The notes below the pieces were generated by a model. That model had not been told where the DNA came from. It saw nothing but the letters and a program-made list of their open reading frames with translations, and did not search any database. Source: Zygnema circumcarinatum SAG 698-1b (taxonomy: Eukaryota; Plantae; Zygnematophyceae). Taken from it: 64,000 nucleotides of DNA. The stretch covers positions 1,674,001 to 1,738,000 of the forward strand of contig CM074804.1 in the NCBI GenBank assembly GCA_037447605.1, written 5' to 3'. The position numbers were made by a program, and so were the translations under genes. Below are positions 44,801-56,800 of this stretch, piece after piece (the first letter of the stretch is position 1; every line of letters begins with the position of its first letter).

Positions 44801-47800
44801 TTACACATCCCCAGACCTCATCTCGCTGGGCCCCTCGCCACGCCTAACAAAATGAGCTTCAAAGTCTATCTTCCCTTGCCCCCCCAAAGGTTGTGCCGAG
44901 CTTTCACATACATTATGTACAGAAGTAGAAGCAGAGGATCTGAATTGGCCTAGACCCCTATCCTGATCCAGACCTGGAGCAGGAGGAGGGGCTGGACCTG
45001 CCTGAGGAGGGACCATGAAGTTAGGAAGATGCATGGGACCCTGAGCTTGTCCTGCATGGAATGCTTGAGCTGCCTGCTCAGCCGCCTTCTCGTTCTCCAT
45101 CTCCTCCAACACTTCATTCCACGCCGCCTTCTTCTCCTCCTCACTGAGCTTCTCCTCGTCCAGCTCTTGTAGCAGATGCCCGTGCTCATGGTGGCGCACG
45201 ATCCACCTGAGCCAATGCAGGGGAGAGAGAGGAAAAATGGAAAGGTTTATTGAAGGGTATGGGAGACGGGAGCAGGCAGAGAGAGTAGTTGGAAAAAAGT
45301 TGGCGAAATGCGATAAGTCTAGCGCCGTTCTGGAAAGTATGGAAACAAAAAAAGGCAGGTGAACGAGTTCGATTCCGAAATGAGCGAGGCAAGGAATTCC
45401 GAGGGAGAAGGAGAGGAGTAGGAGAGGGAGTAAAGGGAGGAGGTTGGGAGTGAGAGAAAGAGAGAAGAGAAAGTTTAGGAAATACTCACTTTGGTCTGTG
45501 CTTCAGAAGCAGCCTTTTCAGGACAACGTCCTTTGGTGGCTTTCCATCGGGTATTATGAAGCCTCGAGCTCCCCAACTTGAATTTCTCTCCCATACGTTG
45601 GGAGTGTCCTTGCCTTCATCCTCTGCCTGCCCGCCAACTGTTACAGAAGGAGGTCCGTTCCCAGTGTCACCTGTTTCTCCAGTCCTCTTTATGCCTTCAT
45701 CTGGGTCACCACTATGACAAAGCGGGGTTGTGAATTTTTTAAGCACAGATTCCGGAACGATTTCTGTTAAGCTTCCGCCCTTGTTGCTATGTGTCTCTGA
45801 AACATGTTGCAGGTCTCCACTGCTCTCTCCAACTGCCTCTCCCGCAGATGGGCAGCTCCGTTGAGGAGGAGCGTCGGTCTCCCGAAAAGGTGACAGATTT
45901 TCCCAATCCAACTCGTCGAACTGAAAGTCGTCACCATCCTCATCCAAGTGAAACAAGACTTCAAGATCGGCATTTGTGAAGTGCCGGGCCACGTGATGGG
46001 AGTCAACTACCCTTGCTGCTAGGCCTTCCTTGCTCACCTGCATGCACGGAGGACGAAGGGAATTGACAGAGGGTAATTAACGGAGATGGTAAACATGTCA
46101 ATCAGGTAATGTAGTAAAAGGGTAAACCGGTAACCTACCTACCGCTCCGGTCCCGCTTCTACCTCCCGCTCTTTCTCTCTTTCTATGTCATGTAAAGCCG
46201 AACCGGGAATTCAACGAGCAAACAAAGTCAAGCACGATGAGGTAATGGAACTCAATAAACGACCAGCACGACTATCAAACATTGGAACAGTTTGTTAAAA
46301 TTAAGAACGAAGGGCAGTGGCTACAGGATACAAAAGCGTACCTGTCGATGATAGACCTTCTCCTCTATCGTCCCATAAGATACCAAGCGATAAGCAACGA
46401 CTTCTTTTGTTTGCCCAAACCTGCCATGAGCAATGCCATTCACGTGGTTTACGCCATCACATAAGAAAAGCATCTGTACACATAGAAAGTTTGACGAATC
46501 TTCACGCTTTACCCTCTCTCTTCTCTATAGAAGAAGAGACGGGAGAGTAAAGCTGGCTAAGGAAGGCGGAAGGAAGAGAGTAGGGAAAGGAGGGAGGATG
46601 GGAGGCCAAGGAGGGAGGGCAGAGAGGTTACAAACCTCCAGACTCTGTAGACAGCTTGCAGGTCATGAGTAGGGTTCCATCCTCCATCCATGAGTACAAC
46701 ACGGTTTGCTGCAGTAAGGTTGATGCCCACCCCCCCTGCCCTTGTGGAGATGAGCATACACGTCACAGTCGCATTCCTTGGATCATTGAAGCGATCCACC
46801 AGCTTTTGCCTCTTCCTTGAAGGTACAGTGCCGTCAATCCTGCGGAGATGCGGGTGACGAAATGTAGAATGGAAATTGAGAATTGACAAGAAGGAGCCGA
46901 GGAAAAACTTCAAAGCGATAATATGGCTTTGATACACGCCCTCTTCACGAAAAAATTCTCAGGTAATTCTAACAGCAATGAGAATGCATCTGAAAACAAC
47001 GAGGGCACTGCTATTGTTTCGTGAGATCTTACCTGTAATATTCGTGGTTTTTTCTCCATCCCTGCTTCCCTTCGTTGGTAAAAGTTGAGAGGAAATCTTC
47101 GATCATGTTAAGTGTGTGAAGGCTGTGGCTGAAAATCAACACTTTTTCCGCTGCTTTAGTGGTCTGCTCCAGAATGTCCATGAGAACGACCATTTTCCCC
47201 GAATGTCGTAAGTGACAGCCAGGTTGTGCAGCTAGTATCTTCTCCCACCAGTTCTGCGTAATCTGGGAGGACAGTGAGAAAGAGAGTGAGAGCAAGGAAA
47301 GGAGAGCGTTGAAAACTCACCTGCCGATCATATGCTATGTTCATGATTGGCTCCAAAAACGTCACTGTGAATCACTGTGAACAAAGCAACATACCTCTGA
47401 GCTCTTCTTGATAAACTGAGGTGTAACATCTACGGGATTGAGGCCAGCTTGTCCCTGAAGGACTTCATCCATATCATTTTCTGTAGAGCCCAATAGAGAC
47501 AGAAACATAGGGTTACATGTTTCAATTAGCTAATGGAACAGCCTTGTCCTGGCAGTTGCCAAAATGGTGGTAGAAAGGTAGCAAGGTAGACAGCTGATAC
47601 CAGACTTTGCGAGTCAGTCGAGTTTTCACGGGAGATTACCCTGTAGGTTTTTACAGCTATCATATATACTTGATGGCTTGATGGCTTTTTGGGCATGTCT
47701 TTTGCCACCGACACTGCATGTGCAAGGAACGAACCGAGAGTACAGTACCTGGCTTGTCCCCATCATTCTCTGACGAGCTCTTTTGATCTGCTTCATTCCC

Positions 47801-50800
47801 TCCATCCTCAACAGGCTCCTGCTTTTGACTTCTACGAAGCAGGTCCGGATGGTTGCAGATCTGCATATCACATACACCCCTCAGTATTTTCGACCAAGGC
47901 TCAGGCGTGAAAAAACAAAGGGTGATATGACCAGAGTTGATGATGTACTCCGAAAACGCCTTTCAAAATGACAGGATTAGTATTTGCACTCGCATGATTC
48001 TGACTTATGCAATGTCAACCTCCAGAGCATGGAGAATACAAAAGTAAGAACGTTAGGTAGAAGAGGGGAACGAAACGTAAGGAAAAAAAGGTACAGATAT
48101 CCTCACCTTGATAGCTTCTGAATAAACTGTCATGACGTCCACTCCAGCGCCCGATCTAGTAGTTGACTGCCTTACTTTCTTCCAAAACTGATTATAAAGC
48201 ACCCTCTGTAAAGGACTCAATCGTACGGCCACCACATAGACGTGCTTCGCCGGAAGAAACTTCTCCAAAAAATTGCTGCCCCTCCTTTGAACGAACCCAC
48301 GGAGTTGCTGGCTGAGGGCGTAAATGCGTCTCTTCATTCTTTGTGCATCCTTTCGGTCTGCATCTCTCTGCTGGCCTCGCTTTATAGGATTTTCATACCT
48401 GTGAATGCAAAGAAGCGCAAACGTACCAGATGAATCGATATCTATTACTTTTGCTAGTAACCAAGTCGAATGAGCCGTTTCATTTAACCCTGACAGGGTT
48501 TAAAACCTAAAACCTCCTACGCGTGGATGTCAAGCCTTACTTACATAGTGGGAATTGTTTAATAGCTTCTGAAAACATTTCAATCATTTCGAACCACTTG
48601 CAGGTGTATCAATGGTACGACTTCTAATGAGTACAACTGCAACGCTCTCCCCTCTCGTTTCTCCTCACCATCTTGCCCTCCCTGTTCCGATCGTCCTACC
48701 ATACCTCCAGTTCTCTATGACTTTCTTCTTCACTACTCTCATATCCTGGCCTCTCTAATCTCCCTTACTGGAAATGCTCAATAACTAGGTAGCTAACACA
48801 AGGCTCAATAATGGTGAACGGGAACAGCAAGCCAGTGAGGCTAGTTCAGAGCATTTTCATGAAATCAGTCACATCACTCACCTGTTTCTGAACTCCTTCA
48901 GACTACCAAGATGTCCTCTCCTAACAAAATCCACCATCTGCAACGGAACCAAGGGAGGGAATTTAAAACACAAAGGTTGGCTATAAATTTTAAGAAATCC
49001 CCGGAATAAGAGAAACCCAAACAATCGAAATAGATCCTGGTAGCTCTTAAATTAAACGTTTGGAATACTCACGCAGAAGTACTCGGTCAGGTTGTTCTGA
49101 AGTGGCGAGCCGGTTAACGCAATCTTTCTTTTTGTGCTTACATCTCCTAATGCCTTGGTGATTTGAGCTTGTGGGTTCTTGATCAAGTGGGCCTCATCGC
49201 AAATCAGAAGGCTTGGACCAGGATCCTGCACACAATGTACAATCCATGCTCCTACGTTTTCAGATCCACACAAGTACAAGCGTCAATGCGTGTCCTATGC
49301 TAAGGTCCGATACAGAGCCCTCCTGTCTCATCTCCCCTCTCCCCTTCCAAGCAGCATCACATGCATCTATCCCAAACTTAATATCTTGAACAGAAAACGG
49401 GGATGATGAGGGGAACAAGTAATTTGAACGGACTAACATGGACCAGAATGAACCAAGCACTACATCACAACTGATTAGAACAATTCCTGAACGGTTCCTG
49501 ACCTGACGATTCCTAGAACAACATATTGCCAGTCTAGCTCAGTCTCAAACACTCACGAGCAAAATCTGTCATTGCCAATAACCATAGCTCATATGAAACA
49601 TCCTGACACTCTTTCCACTCCTTCCATTCAGGATAATTATACCAAATTACAAAATGCAAGCACAGTTAGCTAAGGAGATATACCACAAGCGTCTTCCAAA
49701 AAGAATCCCTTGCTTTTCTCTCCTTTAGTATCTTCCCAGTCGACAAATTTAAGAATGTGGTGTAACCCATTAGAAAGACTCCACCATCGTTGTGCCATTT
49801 CTCTGCATGCGCTGCTAAATCCTCTTCACACCTGAAAGCATGAAAAGATCAACACAAAAATTAGTTCAACAAATCACAGTTGTTAGACAACAGGGCAAAA
49901 AGAAATTGTCAAAGCACGACTTCAAAACTCGATCACACGACCCGATCCTTAAATTACCTCTTGATATCTTCCAGCATGTAAACATGGATGGCTTTCTTCA
50001 GTCCTGACTGCCACTTCTGAAACTCGTTCTTCCAATTGAAAAGAACGTTGGCGGGTACAACAATCAGCACAGTCTTCAGCTCCAACACCGCGTGATTGAG
50101 GACAGTGTGGAGAAATGCAACCACCTGAAAAGGCCAGACAGATATAGACTGAGAAAGGACAAAATCTATTTTTTCTTAATAAAAGGAAAGCCTTCATATT
50201 TTCATTCTTACATGAGTCACAAGAGGAGCTCATGCCGATGTTCATTGCCTGAGTATTCCGATTTCCATACTGGGATGATGATCACGAACAGTAAACAGCC
50301 AAAGTTGATCCAACCGATGAGGTATATAAGGGTCCGTAGGGGGCCTAAACCAGTGGAAATCTTGCCTGTAATGTCTTTCCCAGACCCATACAATGTGCAA
50401 GGATGCAGCCGACTCCTTCGTCTCCATCCTTTACTTTTTGCACCGATTCAATGCAGTTGTTCCACATGAATCGAATACCTTCAACCTGAAACCAAATAGA
50501 AATATTGAAGAATCATTGTAGAAGTTCAACAAGTAATGTCTTTGAGCGCATTAAAATCGCCATTACAAAAAAAAATACAGGTCGAGCAGTGCGCCTGAAA
50601 GCTCAGTGATTTGAAATATGAATCACAAAAAGAATTATCTGAACATGATGATCTACATACCCCTTTTTTTTCTTTTTTAAAGATTGCTCTCCCTATGCCC
50701 TTGTGAATGCATAAAACTTGGTTTGCAGCAAACCTGATGACGCTTCAGCTGCTTCGAGAGCTGGGGATCGATTCTGATGCGGTCTTCATTATCGTCTCGA

Positions 50801-53800
50801 GCCTTGTTGATGGAGATTCCCTTCTGCGGATCGTCTTCTTCCTCGTCATACCCTTCTACTGAACCGTCACCCTGAACTGAGGGATTCCACTTCCTTTTCC
50901 TCGCTCTAATCGCACGCTCTGCTGCCTTGGCTGTGCGTAAAGCGATTCTCTCTTGTCGTTCCTGCCGGACACAAAGAAAAACCGACAAGCAGATAGATAT
51001 TCAAGTCAGAGACCTCCATTAATATGAACATGCACGAAGAAAACTTTTCATACGGAGTAAATATGCCCCCTCTCACCTGCATAGATTTATATTTCAGAGG
51101 AACAACTTAAGGGCAATAGAAACAAGGGCGAAAGGTAGGTGGTGTACCTCTTCCAGCGACTGTTTCAACTGCACCTCCTGACTCTGATCCATTATTTTCC
51201 TCAGCTTCTTCTTGTTCGACCTGTCATGCTCACAAGGTCTTGCTCCTAGCATTAGAACAGATATCCGGCCACCATCTAGTTTCAGAACATGCACAAGCCA
51301 TGGAGTGGAGATCAAAGAATCCTCGAAAGCCAACTAATTTCCAGTATAGGACAACATGTAAGTCGTGCATTCGTTGTCCGAGGTCAGCATATCAGTCAAA
51401 ATCACACATACATGTCTAGCCAGGACGACATAGAGGGTAAGGTGCTCACTTGTGAGAGACGTTCTCTTCATTCTCATCTTGCTCTAACAAAGTTTTCCGC
51501 TCCTCTGCCATCCTGTAGCTCATTTGAAGCGTAGACAACGTATCTGTACTGCATAGGTAGCATTTCCAAAGTGGCTTCTCTGCTATTGCCAGCTCCTTCA
51601 AGCCAAAGTTTCTCTTCATGCATTGTACACAAAAAACGAAATTGCAAGGCTTTTCCGAGTTATCACAAAGAACGAGAGTTTTGCTTTGGGCACACCATCG
51701 ACATTCTTCTTCAACTCCGGCCACATCCTGAATAAACAGTCCAGAAAAGAGGAGGGAAAGTTTTAAGTCATGGATCAGCTTGAAGGTAGCAGGGGGTAAA
51801 CTCGCCTAGACTATTGAAATATAATAGACACACAAGGAATGACAAGGAACAATATAAAAGTTTCCATTAAAGTATTAATTGTCCTCCGAGGCTGTACCTT
51901 TGTGAATTCATTGGCTGCATATCGGGCCAAACACATAGGACAGATCGATACACCAAGTAGAGGATGTTTTCTGATATCTGCAAGCTTTTGCGATTCTCCA
52001 CAAGCTGTGCATAAAAACTTCTCCTGTCCAAGTCCCAATACAAGCACAGGCACCTTACAAGAATAAGTTGGATTCGTGACACAATTTGCAGCAGACATAA
52101 GCGCCAATGCAATGCTTGTTGGTTTAATCCAAACTTAAGTCATTACAACGTGAATGCAAATAGCCATCCAGCAGACACAGACATCAAAACTTATGACTAG
52201 CTCAATCTGATAGGTATTGCTTCTGATGCATGCAACGCTTTATCTGAGTCTTGGAAACGTGAAATGAGAGACTTCGCACAAAATGCAAAAGTAAAATGAA
52301 ACAGGAAAGCATAAGGAGCAATGTTACCTCTTCCAAAGCCCGCTTTGGATGTAACTTCTCACTAGGCGTCTTGTCGGACAGCGATTTCCTCGCCCTCCTC
52401 CTCTGCCTGCCAGATTCACAAAAACGGATAACACAAATACTTACAAATGTACACCGCCCAAAACTACACATCTATCTAGCTGAAATAAGACTGTGATGAA
52501 CTATGTAATCATATTTTTGAATGGGTTGAAAAACCGAAATCAAAAAAATATGTCGGACACTCCTACTTAGGCCTTGAAAACACTCAAACAGAAGTTGTAA
52601 TCCAGCTTAATGGTGTGAACTCACGGGCCGGTTAGCTTCCTTGACTCCCCATTCCACTCCACAAGTTTTTTCTGCACTTCTTCTGCCTCTTTGTAGCGTG
52701 ATCGAAGGGAGCTTATTGCAGCCGGATTGCAGACAAAGCACTGCCAATGATCTTCAAAAATGTCTTTCAATGCTTCCTTTCCGAAATTCCGAATAACACA
52801 TTCTTCACAGAAAACTTTACTGCAGGTCTTCTCAAAAGTATCACATATGATGACACTCCCACCCAGCGCGCACCATCTGCAGTCATCTTCGACTCCAAAC
52901 TCATCCTGCAACAGACACGAAGCGTAACATTATACAATTGCCAGCCTTTGAGGAGGCCAGACAGAGTATTGGTCCAGACAAGAAATTGGAAATCGTAGTT
53001 ACCTATTAAACTTAAATCTAGGTTCTTTACATCAAGAACTGGCAATTTTCTCTACATTGACTTCTCTCCAACTTTTGTTTGATTTTCATGACCAAATCGA
53101 TTAGAGAATGTAGAGTTCCCGCTGAGTCTCACCTTCTTGAACTGGTCCTTGTTATATCGATTCACGCACGAGCGACAGACCAGCACTTCAAGCAAAGGAT
53201 GCTTGTGAATATGTAGAGCTGACAGAAATTTTCCGCACGCAGTACACATGAAGTCCTCGGCTTTAGGTGCTTCCAGCCCCTCTTGGGGCCGCCCAGGTCC
53301 AGCGTCATGTGTGCAGTCCTGGCTGCTACTGCAAGTTTGCTTTGATACGTCATGATCTGGTGAGGCAATTGACCGAAAAAGGATCTCTGTTGTAGGATCC
53401 ATGTCAACCTCTTTTTCACCATCACTATTCAACTCAACTACCTTCTGTGCAGCTGCATTTGCTGCAAACTTTGGAGTCTGATCTCTTTGTATAATCCGTC
53501 TAGATCTACGCAAACTTTGTTGGCTATCATCAGAAAAGATGGCAAGTTCACGACCTGACGGGTTTTCCGGGGTGCACTCTTCACTGTTCTTCTTACTTTC
53601 TTGATATTTTGCTGCCCGTAGATATTCGTTTGCAAGCTCTTCCTTTTCTATACATCCTCGACAGTTTCCTCCCATCTTCTCTATGGAGACTCGCAGTAGT
53701 GAAACAGGAGTGTTCATCAGAACAGAGAAAAAATCATCAGGAATATCCATGGACTGCCCTGTCGACTGAGGACTGGATGGAGTGGGTCTCAAATTCTCTC

Positions 53801-56800
53801 CGTCGATCATAACTTCCTTATTCACTCGCTCCTGAAGGAGAACGTCAATCTGACCTTCTTCCTTTTCAAGAATTCCAATGTTTCCTCTCTCAAGGGTCTC
53901 CTCATTTTCCTCGCGCTTGATTTCTGGTTCGGGCATATCCTGCCGGTTAACATTCTCATCTTTCCGATTGGAATTAGTCAACTTGACTTCCTCGAAATTC
54001 TGGTCTTCTTTTCTCATAACATCCTGGATATTACTACACGGGTTATCAGATCGACAGATATCAGCCAAATTCTTGACTTCCTCCGCATCTTTTTTTTGTC
54101 CTCTGTCTTCTAGATCGCCCAACTGCATTGGTAACTCAAGGGAATCTACCTTCATGGTGAGGGTTTGGCCGACTACCTTTGCAGATTCCTCTGCTACTTC
54201 AATCATCTCAGTTCTTAGAACACCCTCTGAAATATCTTCAGAGTGAAGGGTGACAAAAGTTTCTTGTGCTGCAGAAGCTAGTGCTATGGTTTTATGAATC
54301 GCTTTATCTCTCGGTTCAGATTTTTTTGCATGGGCCCGTAGGAATTCATCAACAAGGTCTGGCTTCTCTATGCATCCTTTCAAGTTCCCTCCCATTTTCA
54401 AGATTGAGCTCCGCAGCATTGGGACAGAAGACTTCATTAGCACAGAGTGAATGTCTTCGGGGAGCTTCATAGCCGGCACTTCCTGTTCTAAAACCGATAA
54501 CATTGGTCTCAGTTCCTCTTCCCCAGTCCTGATGCTCTGCTTTTCCAAATTTTCTTCAGAGTGAGCTTTGCTATTCTTGGCCTTGTCAATTGTTATCTGC
54601 TCAGAAAGCTCCTCTGCCTCCATGGTCAAAGTTTCGTCCTTTCCTCCCTCGTTCACCGTTGGTCCAATCATGGAACACTGATGACTGGAAGGCTCCTGTA
54701 TACTAGGAGAAATCTCAGTCGCAGGCGTTTTCCCAGAGGCTTTCGACTTAATCATCTCGTGAGAAGAGGAAATTTGAGAGGAATTGCTAGATGTATCACC
54801 AGACTGGCCAATGTCATCGTGATTTTTGAATCCCTTTACATCCCCCGCTTCTCCCTCCATGTTAGCACACTGCCCTGGTACAGAAGGTTTGCAGGAATCT
54901 CTTTCCGTTGCTGGCATTTGAACAGCTTCCTTAAAGCAATCGTAGTTTTCCTTTCCTGCACTGCTATTTGAAAAAACCTTAGAAAATTCTGCAGGACAGG
55001 CACTCATATCCAATGGCGCTGCAGGTGGAATTGCAGATCTTCTCACGTTTAGTGGCAGATTGTCTTCAATATCCGAGTCAATGATGATAAGATCAGCTAC
55101 GAACGTGCCGCATGGCCCTCCTTGTTTCTCCTCCAGTTCCTGTAGACGCTCCTCCCGTTGCCTCTCCTCTGCATTCTCTGAAAGCCACTCTTGTTCTTTC
55201 TCTTCCTTATGAAAAGGCACCTCCCTTAACTTTCCTCCCACTTGCTTTTCCTCGTCCGTATGTAAAGGCTCCTCTACTCGAATTTCCCTTCCGTTTTGTA
55301 AACGCTCATTTTCGACATTTCCGCTCAATTCAATCGTGCTCCCGTGGATGGCCATTTCTGCTTCTGCAGAAAGTGGAGCATTTGCGTTTGCCTCCACAGC
55401 ATTCGGCACTACATGATGGCCTAAGCCCCTTTGACTCGTATTTTCTGGATAATGGTCATCCAGACCTTGTCTCAGAGCCCCGTCAACAAGCGCATCATGG
55501 TGTTCAACTTCCTGTTGAACGTCAAATGAGGGCGTCAAAACTCGGCCATGAAGATCAGGATTCTGCTCCAAACCTTGAGCCTTGGTCACAAAAGTCGTGA
55601 GTACCTGCATGCAAAAAACTTAAAATCTTAAAAAAGATAGGCAACCCCCACTTGCGATCGTAATAAACAGTACGAACTCCGCACTGAATCCGAGATATCA
55701 AAGCACAAGGTATCACTTCGCCTTCAATCAGCCTGAAACTTTGATGGATTTCATCTGATTTCATTTCATTTTTTATTGATTGCCTTCACTATGCATTATC
55801 AAACTCCTGTCTCCCGTAGCAATGCACCACTTTAAGGGCCTCGAAGATACAGATTTGTGATACAAGATTCAGCGCCAAAACGAGCAACTTCACCTTTTTC
55901 CTCGATGATGGTCGCACTTGAGTCCCTTCCATAGATCCAAGGGCTTGCGATGCTGGCTCGCAGTTCATGCGTTTTCTCTTCTGCTGCCTTCTTACCTTCT
56001 TCTCTTCCATTGCTCGATCTTGGTTCTCGCCCACCTTTTCAACAGTAAAATGGAATCAAAGCATTATACAACGAAAGTCCAGAAACCAATGAACGAAGTG
56101 GTAATAGGGAGTAAGGGAGGATGTGCAAGAACAGAGGGAGCTCAACAATGCCCTACATACAAATCACGACAGAGGCTAAGGATCGGGAATTCCAAACGCA
56201 GGGTGCAGCAACGAGAGGGAAGGTAACTGCGGCGAAAGGAAATCGAGGGAGGAAGGTTTAGAACGTGAAGAATAGAAGGTGAAGAACACAGCGAGAGTCC
56301 TCAATGCGTTACGCGAGGTAGCAAATGAGAATCACTTTTCATCTCTCAACAACATGAAACTCACCTTCTGAACATTGCTCCGCCGTTTTCGTTTTTTTTC
56401 CAGTTCCCTTTCCTTCTTGACAGCCCGTTTATATTGCCAAGGCTGTATGTTTTTGGGGCACAAGGCTGTGTCCAAGTCTTCGAGTTCATCAATTTCCTGT
56501 AAACATGATCAGGTATTAATTTCAGCACAATTCCGCCATAGGAATTTAGCCTCAGGCTGTTTACATCAGATCTGTTTTATCGTCATAAGACGGAGATGCC
56601 ATGAAACCAAAAATGGGTTTGCTATGTGGCATGTCACCTCTGCAGCTACGCAACCATGTTTTTAATTACCTTCAACTTACCAGACACTTCTTCCGTTTCT
56701 TGCCAGTGTGTGGCTGATCAGTTTCAGAAAGATCAGAGTCATCATCGGATTCAGAGTCAGAATCTGCAGCATTTTCATCCAACTTCCTGCACGAGCTCCG

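Follow-up and report, generated by a model that had tools for sequence, protein, structure and literature searches.

The remodeller ATRX is targeted to chromatin largely through a single ADD domain, and the descriptions that we found show one ADD. According to a review of ATRX, there is one ADD per protein, or the protein is split into two genes in Drosophila, and functions in H3.3 deposition or heterochromatin are known for the human and Arabidopsis members (PMC12607251). The human ADD reads histone H3 by means of Tyr203, which stacks on K9me3, together with Tyr204, His189, Glu252 and an acidic loop (residues 207-218); further ligands of this pocket are macroH2A and CHD4 (PMC12900699). Here, we describe an ATRX gene with two ADDs. 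It lies on the minus strand of a stretch of 64,000 nucleotides from the streptophyte (green-lineage) alga Zygnema circumcarinatum SAG 698-1b (GenBank assembly GCA_037447605.1, contig CM074804.1, positions 1,674,001 to 1,738,000 of the forward strand). This whole stretch is called the window hereafter, and positions are numbered from its first letter.

The reading that we consider quite probable is that the gene is an orthologue of ATRX/CHROMATIN REMODELING 20 (CHR20) in which an exon cassette was duplicated in tandem and in frame long ago, so that one mRNA encodes two ADDs upstream of the SNF2 ATPase. An ATRX with a double ADD is an undescribed layout that arose from an ordinary kind of evolutionary event, in-frame duplication of an exon cassette being a common route of domain gain.

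An ATRX orthologue with two ADD modules in series

The ADD of human ATRX (PDB 2JM1, 3QL9, 3QLA and 4W5A) is composed of a C4 GATA-like finger, a C4C4 PHD-like finger and a long C-terminal helix, with 12 cysteines. The same composition is found in the alga, where, unlike in the human protein, two modules follow each other in series instead of one. On the minus strand of the window, one complete module is found at 53258-52625 and another at 52023-51450. They are named ADD-1 and ADD-2, respectively, in the following; the first Cys codon of the ADD-1 GATA finger is at 53246. Aligned with each other and with the human domain, both copies keep 12 of the 12 zinc-ligating cysteines. The two complete tandem ADDs that a preliminary description of the window had reported on this strand are therefore borne out by the sequence, by the alignments and by Pfam. 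The modules are spaced by 162 residues. In reciprocal tblastn searches inside the window, the copies found each other, the PHD exons with an E value of 1e-19 and the GATA exons with one of 3e-10, and neither a third ADD nor a local paralogue of the 3' part of the gene was detected there.

The assignment of the gene to ATRX/CHR20 is supported by matches along its length. In blastx comparisons, 12 colinear blocks extending from 57197 to 44891 were aligned with the ATRX proteins of Marchantia, Sphagnum and Diphasiastrum, and colinearity was also observed with those of Riccia and Ceratopteris, a series made up of liverwort, moss, lycophyte and fern. The top full-length matches were the 'ATP-dependent helicase ATRX' of Riccia fluitans and of Ceratopteris richardii. 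When single exons were compared with Pfam, those downstream of the ADDs matched SNF2-rel_dom (up to 44.9 bits) and Helicase_C (55.8 bits). The conserved N-terminal block, the ADD, the basic RRNIR..LALEK segment, the ERQER segment, the SNF2 domain and Helicase_C come in the same order as in the land-plant members with which the gene was compared (Riccia KAL2624343.1, Marchantia Mp_5g21000, Sphagnum, Physcomitrium, Selaginella, Ceratopteris and angiosperms). ADD-1 and ADD-2 both map onto the same single ADD of the Riccia, Marchantia, Sphagnum, Diphasiastrum and Ceratopteris proteins. The usual ATRX layout, with one ADD N-terminal to the ATPase, thus gives way here to two modules; this second ADD is a difference in copy number, and the gene stays in the ATRX/CHR20 subfamily. 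Like the algal gene, the Drosophila pair dADD1/dXNP illustrates evolutionary plasticity in the coupling of the ADD to the SNF2 motor (PMC4249797, PMC10671109, PMC12607251), but in the fly the ADD and the helicase are carried by two genes, whereas in the alga the ADD is doubled within one.

Domain identity and predicted fold of the two copies

Both GATA exons passed the Pfam cut-off of ADD_ATRX (PF17981, 25.7 bits), with 43.3 bits for ADD-1, where the match covers residues 785-826 of the large exon, and 30.4 bits for ADD-2. For the PHD half, the sole Pfam model is PF21255, which was built on DNMT3 proteins, and the two exons remained just under its cut-off (21.6 and 24.8 against 27). When the PHD exons were compared with the PDB by phmmer, the human ATRX ADD (2JM1) was matched with E values of 3.6e-14 for ADD-1 and 1.6e-11 for ADD-2, ahead of DNMT3A, DNMT3B and DNMT3L. 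The eight cysteines of the PHD half are invariant columns in an alignment of 54 sequences. Judged by these sequence comparisons, the two ADD matches are far beyond chance.

Each PHD exon was also folded singly with AlphaFold2 on the 54-sequence alignment. The predicted PHD halves reached a mean predicted local distance difference test (pLDDT) score of 87.8 for ADD-1 and 88.7 for ADD-2. For each model, the eight best Foldseek matches in the PDB were all crystal structures of the human ATRX ADD, and the DNMT3 ADDs came next. Superposition on the human ATRX ADD gave root-mean-square deviations of 1.2-2.0 Å over 69-81 columns, with 1.2-1.5 Å for the best matches of ADD-1.

Both modules in spliced transcripts

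Five public runs contain about 0.70-0.73 of the sampled words of 51200-55700, which is roughly the estimated exonic share of that stretch. The splicing of the gene was followed on the contigs of four public runs from two studies (X1 to X4), aligned to 50000-55900. These contigs are devoid of introns and show eight joints, all of them at predicted GT..AG boundaries: 53132/52905, 52625/52406, 52328/52023, 51898/51727, 51450/51220 and 51148/50961, plus two in the helicase part. A contig of 3672 nucleotides in X4 (record 15) starts in 5' sequence outside the aligned stretch, continues through the large exon and the ADD-1 PHD exon and, by way of the linker, reaches the ADD-2 GATA exon, and record 6 of X2 spans the same series of exons. 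The joint between the GATA and PHD exons of ADD-2 was present in all four runs (its shorter side measures 121 nucleotides in X3), and contigs of 1.9-3.5 kb (records 1, 5 and 13) connect the ADD-2 PHD exon with the SNF2 exons. The preliminary description had looked to one cDNA containing both exon pairs: all the junctions that put both ADDs into one mRNA were recovered, and no skipping joint appeared.

A tandem duplication of exons can also lead to alternative use of the copies, in which case the main protein would possess only one ADD, taken from either of the two variants. Mutually exclusive use is frequent among exons duplicated in tandem, and the cassettes, with coding lengths of 486 and 477 nucleotides and phase 0 at both ends, could be skipped in frame. 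Some heterogeneity of the transcripts is moreover suggested by a break of the contigs, described below. Against this stand the junctions themselves: in the four runs, the ADD-1 PHD exon is joined through the linker to the ADD-2 GATA exon and the latter to the ADD-2 PHD exon, these constitutive joints are found at the full depth of their contigs, and a joint that skips a cassette was not seen among the contigs of the four runs. We consequently regard alternative use of the cassettes as very improbable.

Several observations weigh against one continuous mRNA with two ADDs as the whole output of the gene. The two ADDs and the helicase are not united in any single contig. The contigs of X1, X2 and X4 break at 51606-51635, in the ADD-2 PHD exon, with an overlap of 30 nucleotides, and downstream of this point the mean depth rises in the four runs, from 12-54 to 37-112. 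The break and the jump in depth could reflect an additional form of the transcript. The cause might be a 3' bias combined with a variant branch, transcription from an internal start that would yield a helicase-only mRNA devoid of ADDs, or the presence of the 3' part at another place in the genome; a second copy of this part was not found in the window. In addition, contigs show what is present and drop rare variants, so that minor skipping isoforms may exist, and the RNA nature of the runs is presumed from contigs that lack introns and are bounded by GT..AG.

Contigs of low depth (3.4-3.8 compared with 26-54) run through the intron that follows the ADD-1 PHD exon, at 52409-52651, in X2 and X3, and one of them contains an additional A at 52541. 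Their probable source is unspliced pre-mRNA or trace DNA.

Structure and origin of the duplicated cassette

The exons and introns of the two cassettes are listed in Table 1. The GATA/PHD introns of both copies are in phase 0 and fall between the same aligned Lys and Asp residues, in agreement with the matching intron position noted at the outset. The ADD-1 PHD exon reads DEFG..CRWC..C-x6-C..C-x2-C..C-x2-C and ends with the long helix, a layout that ADD-2 repeats. The first short basic exon forms the linker between ADD-1 and ADD-2 and encodes about 26 residues.

Table 1. Exons, introns and domains of the Zygnema ATRX gene, in the direction of transcription (positions in the window)
Feature	Position	Strand	Basis
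Large acidic exon, 2.47 kb, ~824 codons; its end is the ADD-1 GATA finger	53133..55604	(-)	Open frame; gapless contig cover 53132-55606
ADD-1 GATA-like C4 finger, CTAC..19 residues..CRSC, then ..FKK	53133..53258	(-)	PF17981
ADD-1 intron, 227 nt, phase 0, GT..AG	52906..53132	(-)	Joint in all four runs
ADD-1 PHD-like C4C4 finger and C-terminal helix, 281 nt, phase-2 end	52625..52905	(-)	PDB 2JM1 match, fold
Short basic exon 1, 79 nt, phase 2 to 0, ends ..ALEE	52328..52406	(-)	Spliced joints; RRNIR..LALEK alignment
ADD-2 GATA-like C4 finger exon, 126 nt, phase 0 to 0, ends ..FTK	51898..52023	(-)	PF17981; contig joints
ADD-2 intron, 170 nt, phase 0, GT..AG	51728..51897	(-)	Joint in four runs
ADD-2 PHD-like C4C4 finger and C-terminal helix, 278 nt, phase-2 end	51450..51727	(-)	PDB 2JM1 match, fold
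Short basic exon 2, 73 nt, phase 2 to 0, ends ..SLEE; paralogue of the linker exon	51148..51220	(-)	Spliced joints
Next exon, starts ERQER..	50734..50961	(-)	Translation; joints; Sphagnum homology after the single ADD cassette
SNF2 ATPase and Helicase_C exons, same gene	44891..50485	(-)	Pfam, blastx colinearity, spliced contigs from the ADD-2 PHD exon

The duplicated unit is a cassette of three exons, GATA, PHD and short basic exon. Each of the two short basic exons can be aligned with RRNIR..LALEK, the segment located after the ADD in land-plant ATRX, and the similarity score observed between them was reached by 35 of 5000 shuffles. The ERQER.. sequence follows only the second cassette in the window. 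In the Sphagnum ATRX gene, the cassette is present once, as GATA exon, intron, PHD exon and short basic exon ending in ..LALEK, followed by ERQER... As the coding length of the cassette is divisible by three and both its ends are in phase 0, its tandem genomic duplication stayed in frame. The duplication put forward in the preliminary description was thus retained, but not as that of an exon pair, since the short basic exon makes three.

The common intron, which had been taken as a sign of the duplication, turned out to be older than the duplication, as Sphagnum has it. The Sphagnum gene, taken from peat-bog metagenome contigs, has a phase-0 intron between the same Lys and Asp (9792-10000 in contig L004). 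As the positions are shared, this phase-0 intron is ancestral and was not made by the duplication; on this comparison, the event was a duplication at the DNA level that preserved old introns. Two contigs from a JGI peat metagenome, L004 (Ga0116229_10000495) and L005 (Ga0209208_10002329), contain an apparently complete Sphagnum ATRX gene, the blocks of which are mostly 94-100% identical to the S. magellanicum protein.

ADD-1 and ADD-2 share 48% identity over the GATA part and 38% over the PHD part, the zinc-binding core being aligned without gaps. No repeat is left between the cassettes at the DNA level, and the duplication is therefore old. The preliminary description of the copies as old, strongly diverged and both retained agrees with these values and with the expression of both. 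An assembly artefact was considered and rejected, in view of the low identity of the copies (only 38-48%) and of the transcripts that connect both.

A hidden Markov model of land-plant ADDs (n = 12) gave 42.9 and 82.8 bits for the two parts of ADD-1 and 34.1 and 67.8 bits for those of ADD-2, and in a tree of the PHD half the branch of ADD-2 (2.21) is longer than that of ADD-1 (0.89). By these comparisons, ADD-2 is the more diverged copy, which evolved faster, and ADD-1 is the nearer to the land-plant consensus. Both copies have the plant-type spacing of 19 residues in the GATA finger, which is 22 in the human domain and other animals. They also share an insert of four residues between zinc ligands (CD-TFEK-TC in ADD-1 and CD-NSEK-PC in ADD-2), giving C-x6-C with a common EK, whereas the human domain and all the other animal and land-plant ADDs examined have C-x2-C at this place. 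The C-x6-C loop was also considered as a unique marker and rejected, as loops of x4 to x9 are found in unrelated protist ADDs too; since such longer loops occur there, the insert is informative only within streptophytes. Within this group, it favours a duplication in the algal lineage that would be younger than the divergence from land plants.

Another possibility is that the duplication predates this split and that land plants lost one cassette, the double ADD being the ancestral state of streptophytes. The PHD exons of the two copies are about as different from each other (38% identity) as from land-plant or animal ADDs (35-51%). The phylogeny proposed for the two ADDs places them as sisters in the best tree, but this relation is devoid of support (48/0), a point that also tells against a duplication within the algal lineage. 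Nevertheless, the EK insert is common to both copies and occurs in no land-plant ADD, and a single ADD is seen in all the sampled lineages of land plants, from liverworts to angiosperms, so that an early origin would need a loss in the stem and the removal of the insert. Taken with the sister position in the best tree, this makes an origin before the split rather unlikely in our view.

A second internal duplication was noted in the same gene. The large exon contains, at 53611-54443, two SAP-like repeats of about 45 residues (..VLM..L..SI.KMGGN..GCIEK..L..E.LRA), one of which matches ARMET_C weakly in Pfam (21.5 bits, with a cut-off of 23.5).

Histone-reading residues

The residues of the reading pocket were mapped by HMMER alignments to the human ATRX ADD. 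Tyr204 and His189 are kept in both copies, and the equivalents of Asp212, Asp217 and Glu218 in the acidic loop are acidic in both. The pocket motifs that had been pointed out as different, RYNKD..EDDC and RYAAN..EEEC, are present as quoted. At the position of Asp207, ADD-1 has Asp and ADD-2 has Asn; at that of Glu252, ADD-1 has Ala and ADD-2 has Glu.

Two replacements relative to the human domain could tell against a binding of H3 by both copies. The position of Tyr203 is occupied by Arg in ADD-1 and ADD-2, and the Gly-Gly that precedes the peptide-pairing strand, at least 90% conserved in the 54-sequence alignment, is Ser-Lys in ADD-2. The histone binding of ADD-2 may therefore be altered or lost. 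Reading of H3K4me0 and H3K9me3, which the preliminary description attributed to the ATRX ADD, is shown for the human protein only (PMC12900699). At the position of Tyr203, which also varies across land plants, His, Phe, Ala, Gln and Cys were found in these, and K9me3 reading is therefore not to be assumed for plant ATRX.

From these replacements one could suppose that ADD-2 has preserved its fold while its function has shifted or is decaying, so that it would no longer read the H3 tail and would serve another partner or act as a mere spacer. Its longer branch and lower score with the land-plant profile, the Ser-Lys in place of Gly-Gly and the change of Asp207 to Asn are in line with this, and in the human ADD one pocket accommodates several partners, macroH2A and CHD4 among them (PMC12900699). 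On the other hand, ADD-2 retains the 12 cysteines, His189, Tyr204, Glu252 and the acidic D..EE loop. Its frame is open and its exon is expressed, and the PHD fold is predicted with confidence and is ATRX-like; a copy diverged to this extent and free of constraint would be expected to have lost zinc ligands. We hold such a change of function to be doubtful.

For the function of the pair, the following mechanism can be proposed. The old tandem duplication of the three-exon genomic cassette most probably led to an mRNA with two ADD modules in series; the three-zinc scaffold was retained in both copies, and ADD-2 diverged faster. Each ADD would bind the N-terminal tail of H3 through the conserved acidic loop and the PHD groove, and the two ADDs, with the basic linker, would give a higher avidity by engaging both H3 tails or neighbouring nucleosomes. 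As an alternative to avidity, ADD-1 and ADD-2 might have split specificities. Either way, the pair of ADDs would tether the remodeller to its target chromatin. A division of labour in which ADD-1 would retain the ancestral reading of the unmodified H3 tail, while ADD-2, with Ser-Lys for Gly-Gly altering the entry of its peptide groove and with pocket residues of its own, would read another mark, a histone variant or a non-histone partner, seems unlikely to us at present.

Distribution of double ADDs

Among 121 land-plant ATRX/CHR20 clusters, which cover liverworts, mosses, lycophytes, ferns, gymnosperms and angiosperms, 108 have one GATA and one PHD part, 13 have a partial ADD or none, and none has two. 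A count of this kind had been proposed in the preliminary description, and it indicates that double ADDs are not common in land-plant ATRX. The algal gene shares with these proteins the 19-residue GATA spacing and, as seen in Sphagnum, the phase-0 GATA/PHD intron; it differs from all 121 clusters, which have at most one ADD, in having the cassette twice with the insert in both. In the helicase search, land plants fill the best 120 of 4410 matches.

A profile search of 1.84 billion representatives gave 631 ADD-type proteins, and a local count on the best 150 of these showed two PHD-type stretches in nine. Three of the nine look like artefacts or very recent repeats. In a Nematostella vectensis protein (P0003, EDO44497.1), 283 residues including the ADD are repeated exactly at an offset of 466, and P0005 also has an exact repeat; both are probably artefacts of the gene model or of the assembly. 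The ADD units of a kinase fusion from the single-cell assembly of Picozoa SAG22 (P0001) are nearly identical. Diverged double ADDs are found in P0100, in P0002 and in the family formed by P0015, P0060 and P0093, which are unnamed proteins from protists or metagenomes. Like the algal gene product, they have two GATA and PHD modules per polypeptide, but none has an SNF2 domain. In the PHD-half tree, the doublets of the database pair within their own protein or family; the duplication of the ADD has therefore arisen several times independently, and those of the unnamed proteins are independent of the algal one.

P0100 (L001:2809-3816, on a Logan contig of SRR27556032) is a stand-alone protein of 335 residues in which two diverged full ADDs are 164 residues apart, compared with 162 in the alga; its contig is intron-poor and eukaryotic, and a kinase gene adjoins. 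P0015 (held by contig L002), P0060 and P0093 measure 685-958 residues and have two ADDs each. Their first domains group together, as do the second ones, a pattern which indicates a putative older duplication common to the family. Two further entries from JGI/IMG, P0058 and P0306, are eukaryote-type ADD/PHD finger proteins under the name 'virulence-associated protein VapD', which looks like a mis-annotation.

That an ATRX with a double ADD is not known to have been described, as the preliminary description held, was borne out. Our literature search found no relevant paper on two or tandem ADDs, and the land-plant clusters contain no such protein, but double ADDs as such do exist in the unnamed protist proteins without SNF2. 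A weak point for the placement of the duplication is that the sequence searches yielded no orthologue from another streptophyte alga. A word-indexed search with the Riccia ADD region returned liverworts only, and the large exon of the window gave no match within the length range searched. A first metagenome scan yielded no relative, and a second one only Sphagnum and one moss-like contig. In the all-against-all search of the representatives there was no match at E ≤ 1e-30; the protein of the window and any close relative are therefore absent from the representative library.

Significance of the doubled ADD

The known working of the ADD or of ATRX is unchanged by the finding of a double ADD. 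What is added is evidence of recurrent and independent duplication of the ADD in several eukaryotic lineages and, with the cassette duplication and the four-residue insert common to both copies, a dated marker for the evolution of chromatin readers in streptophytes. If the two copies did divide their labour as outlined above, the protein would be a bivalent reader, engaging only when two signals are present, either together on one nucleosome or on adjacent ones, and it would provide, close to where land plants arose, a natural experiment on how a remodeller is targeted multivalently. More generally, this doubled, diverged and expressed pair of ADDs, in an alga closely related to land plants, offers a system in which multivalency and pocket variation in the targeting of a remodeller can be put to the test.

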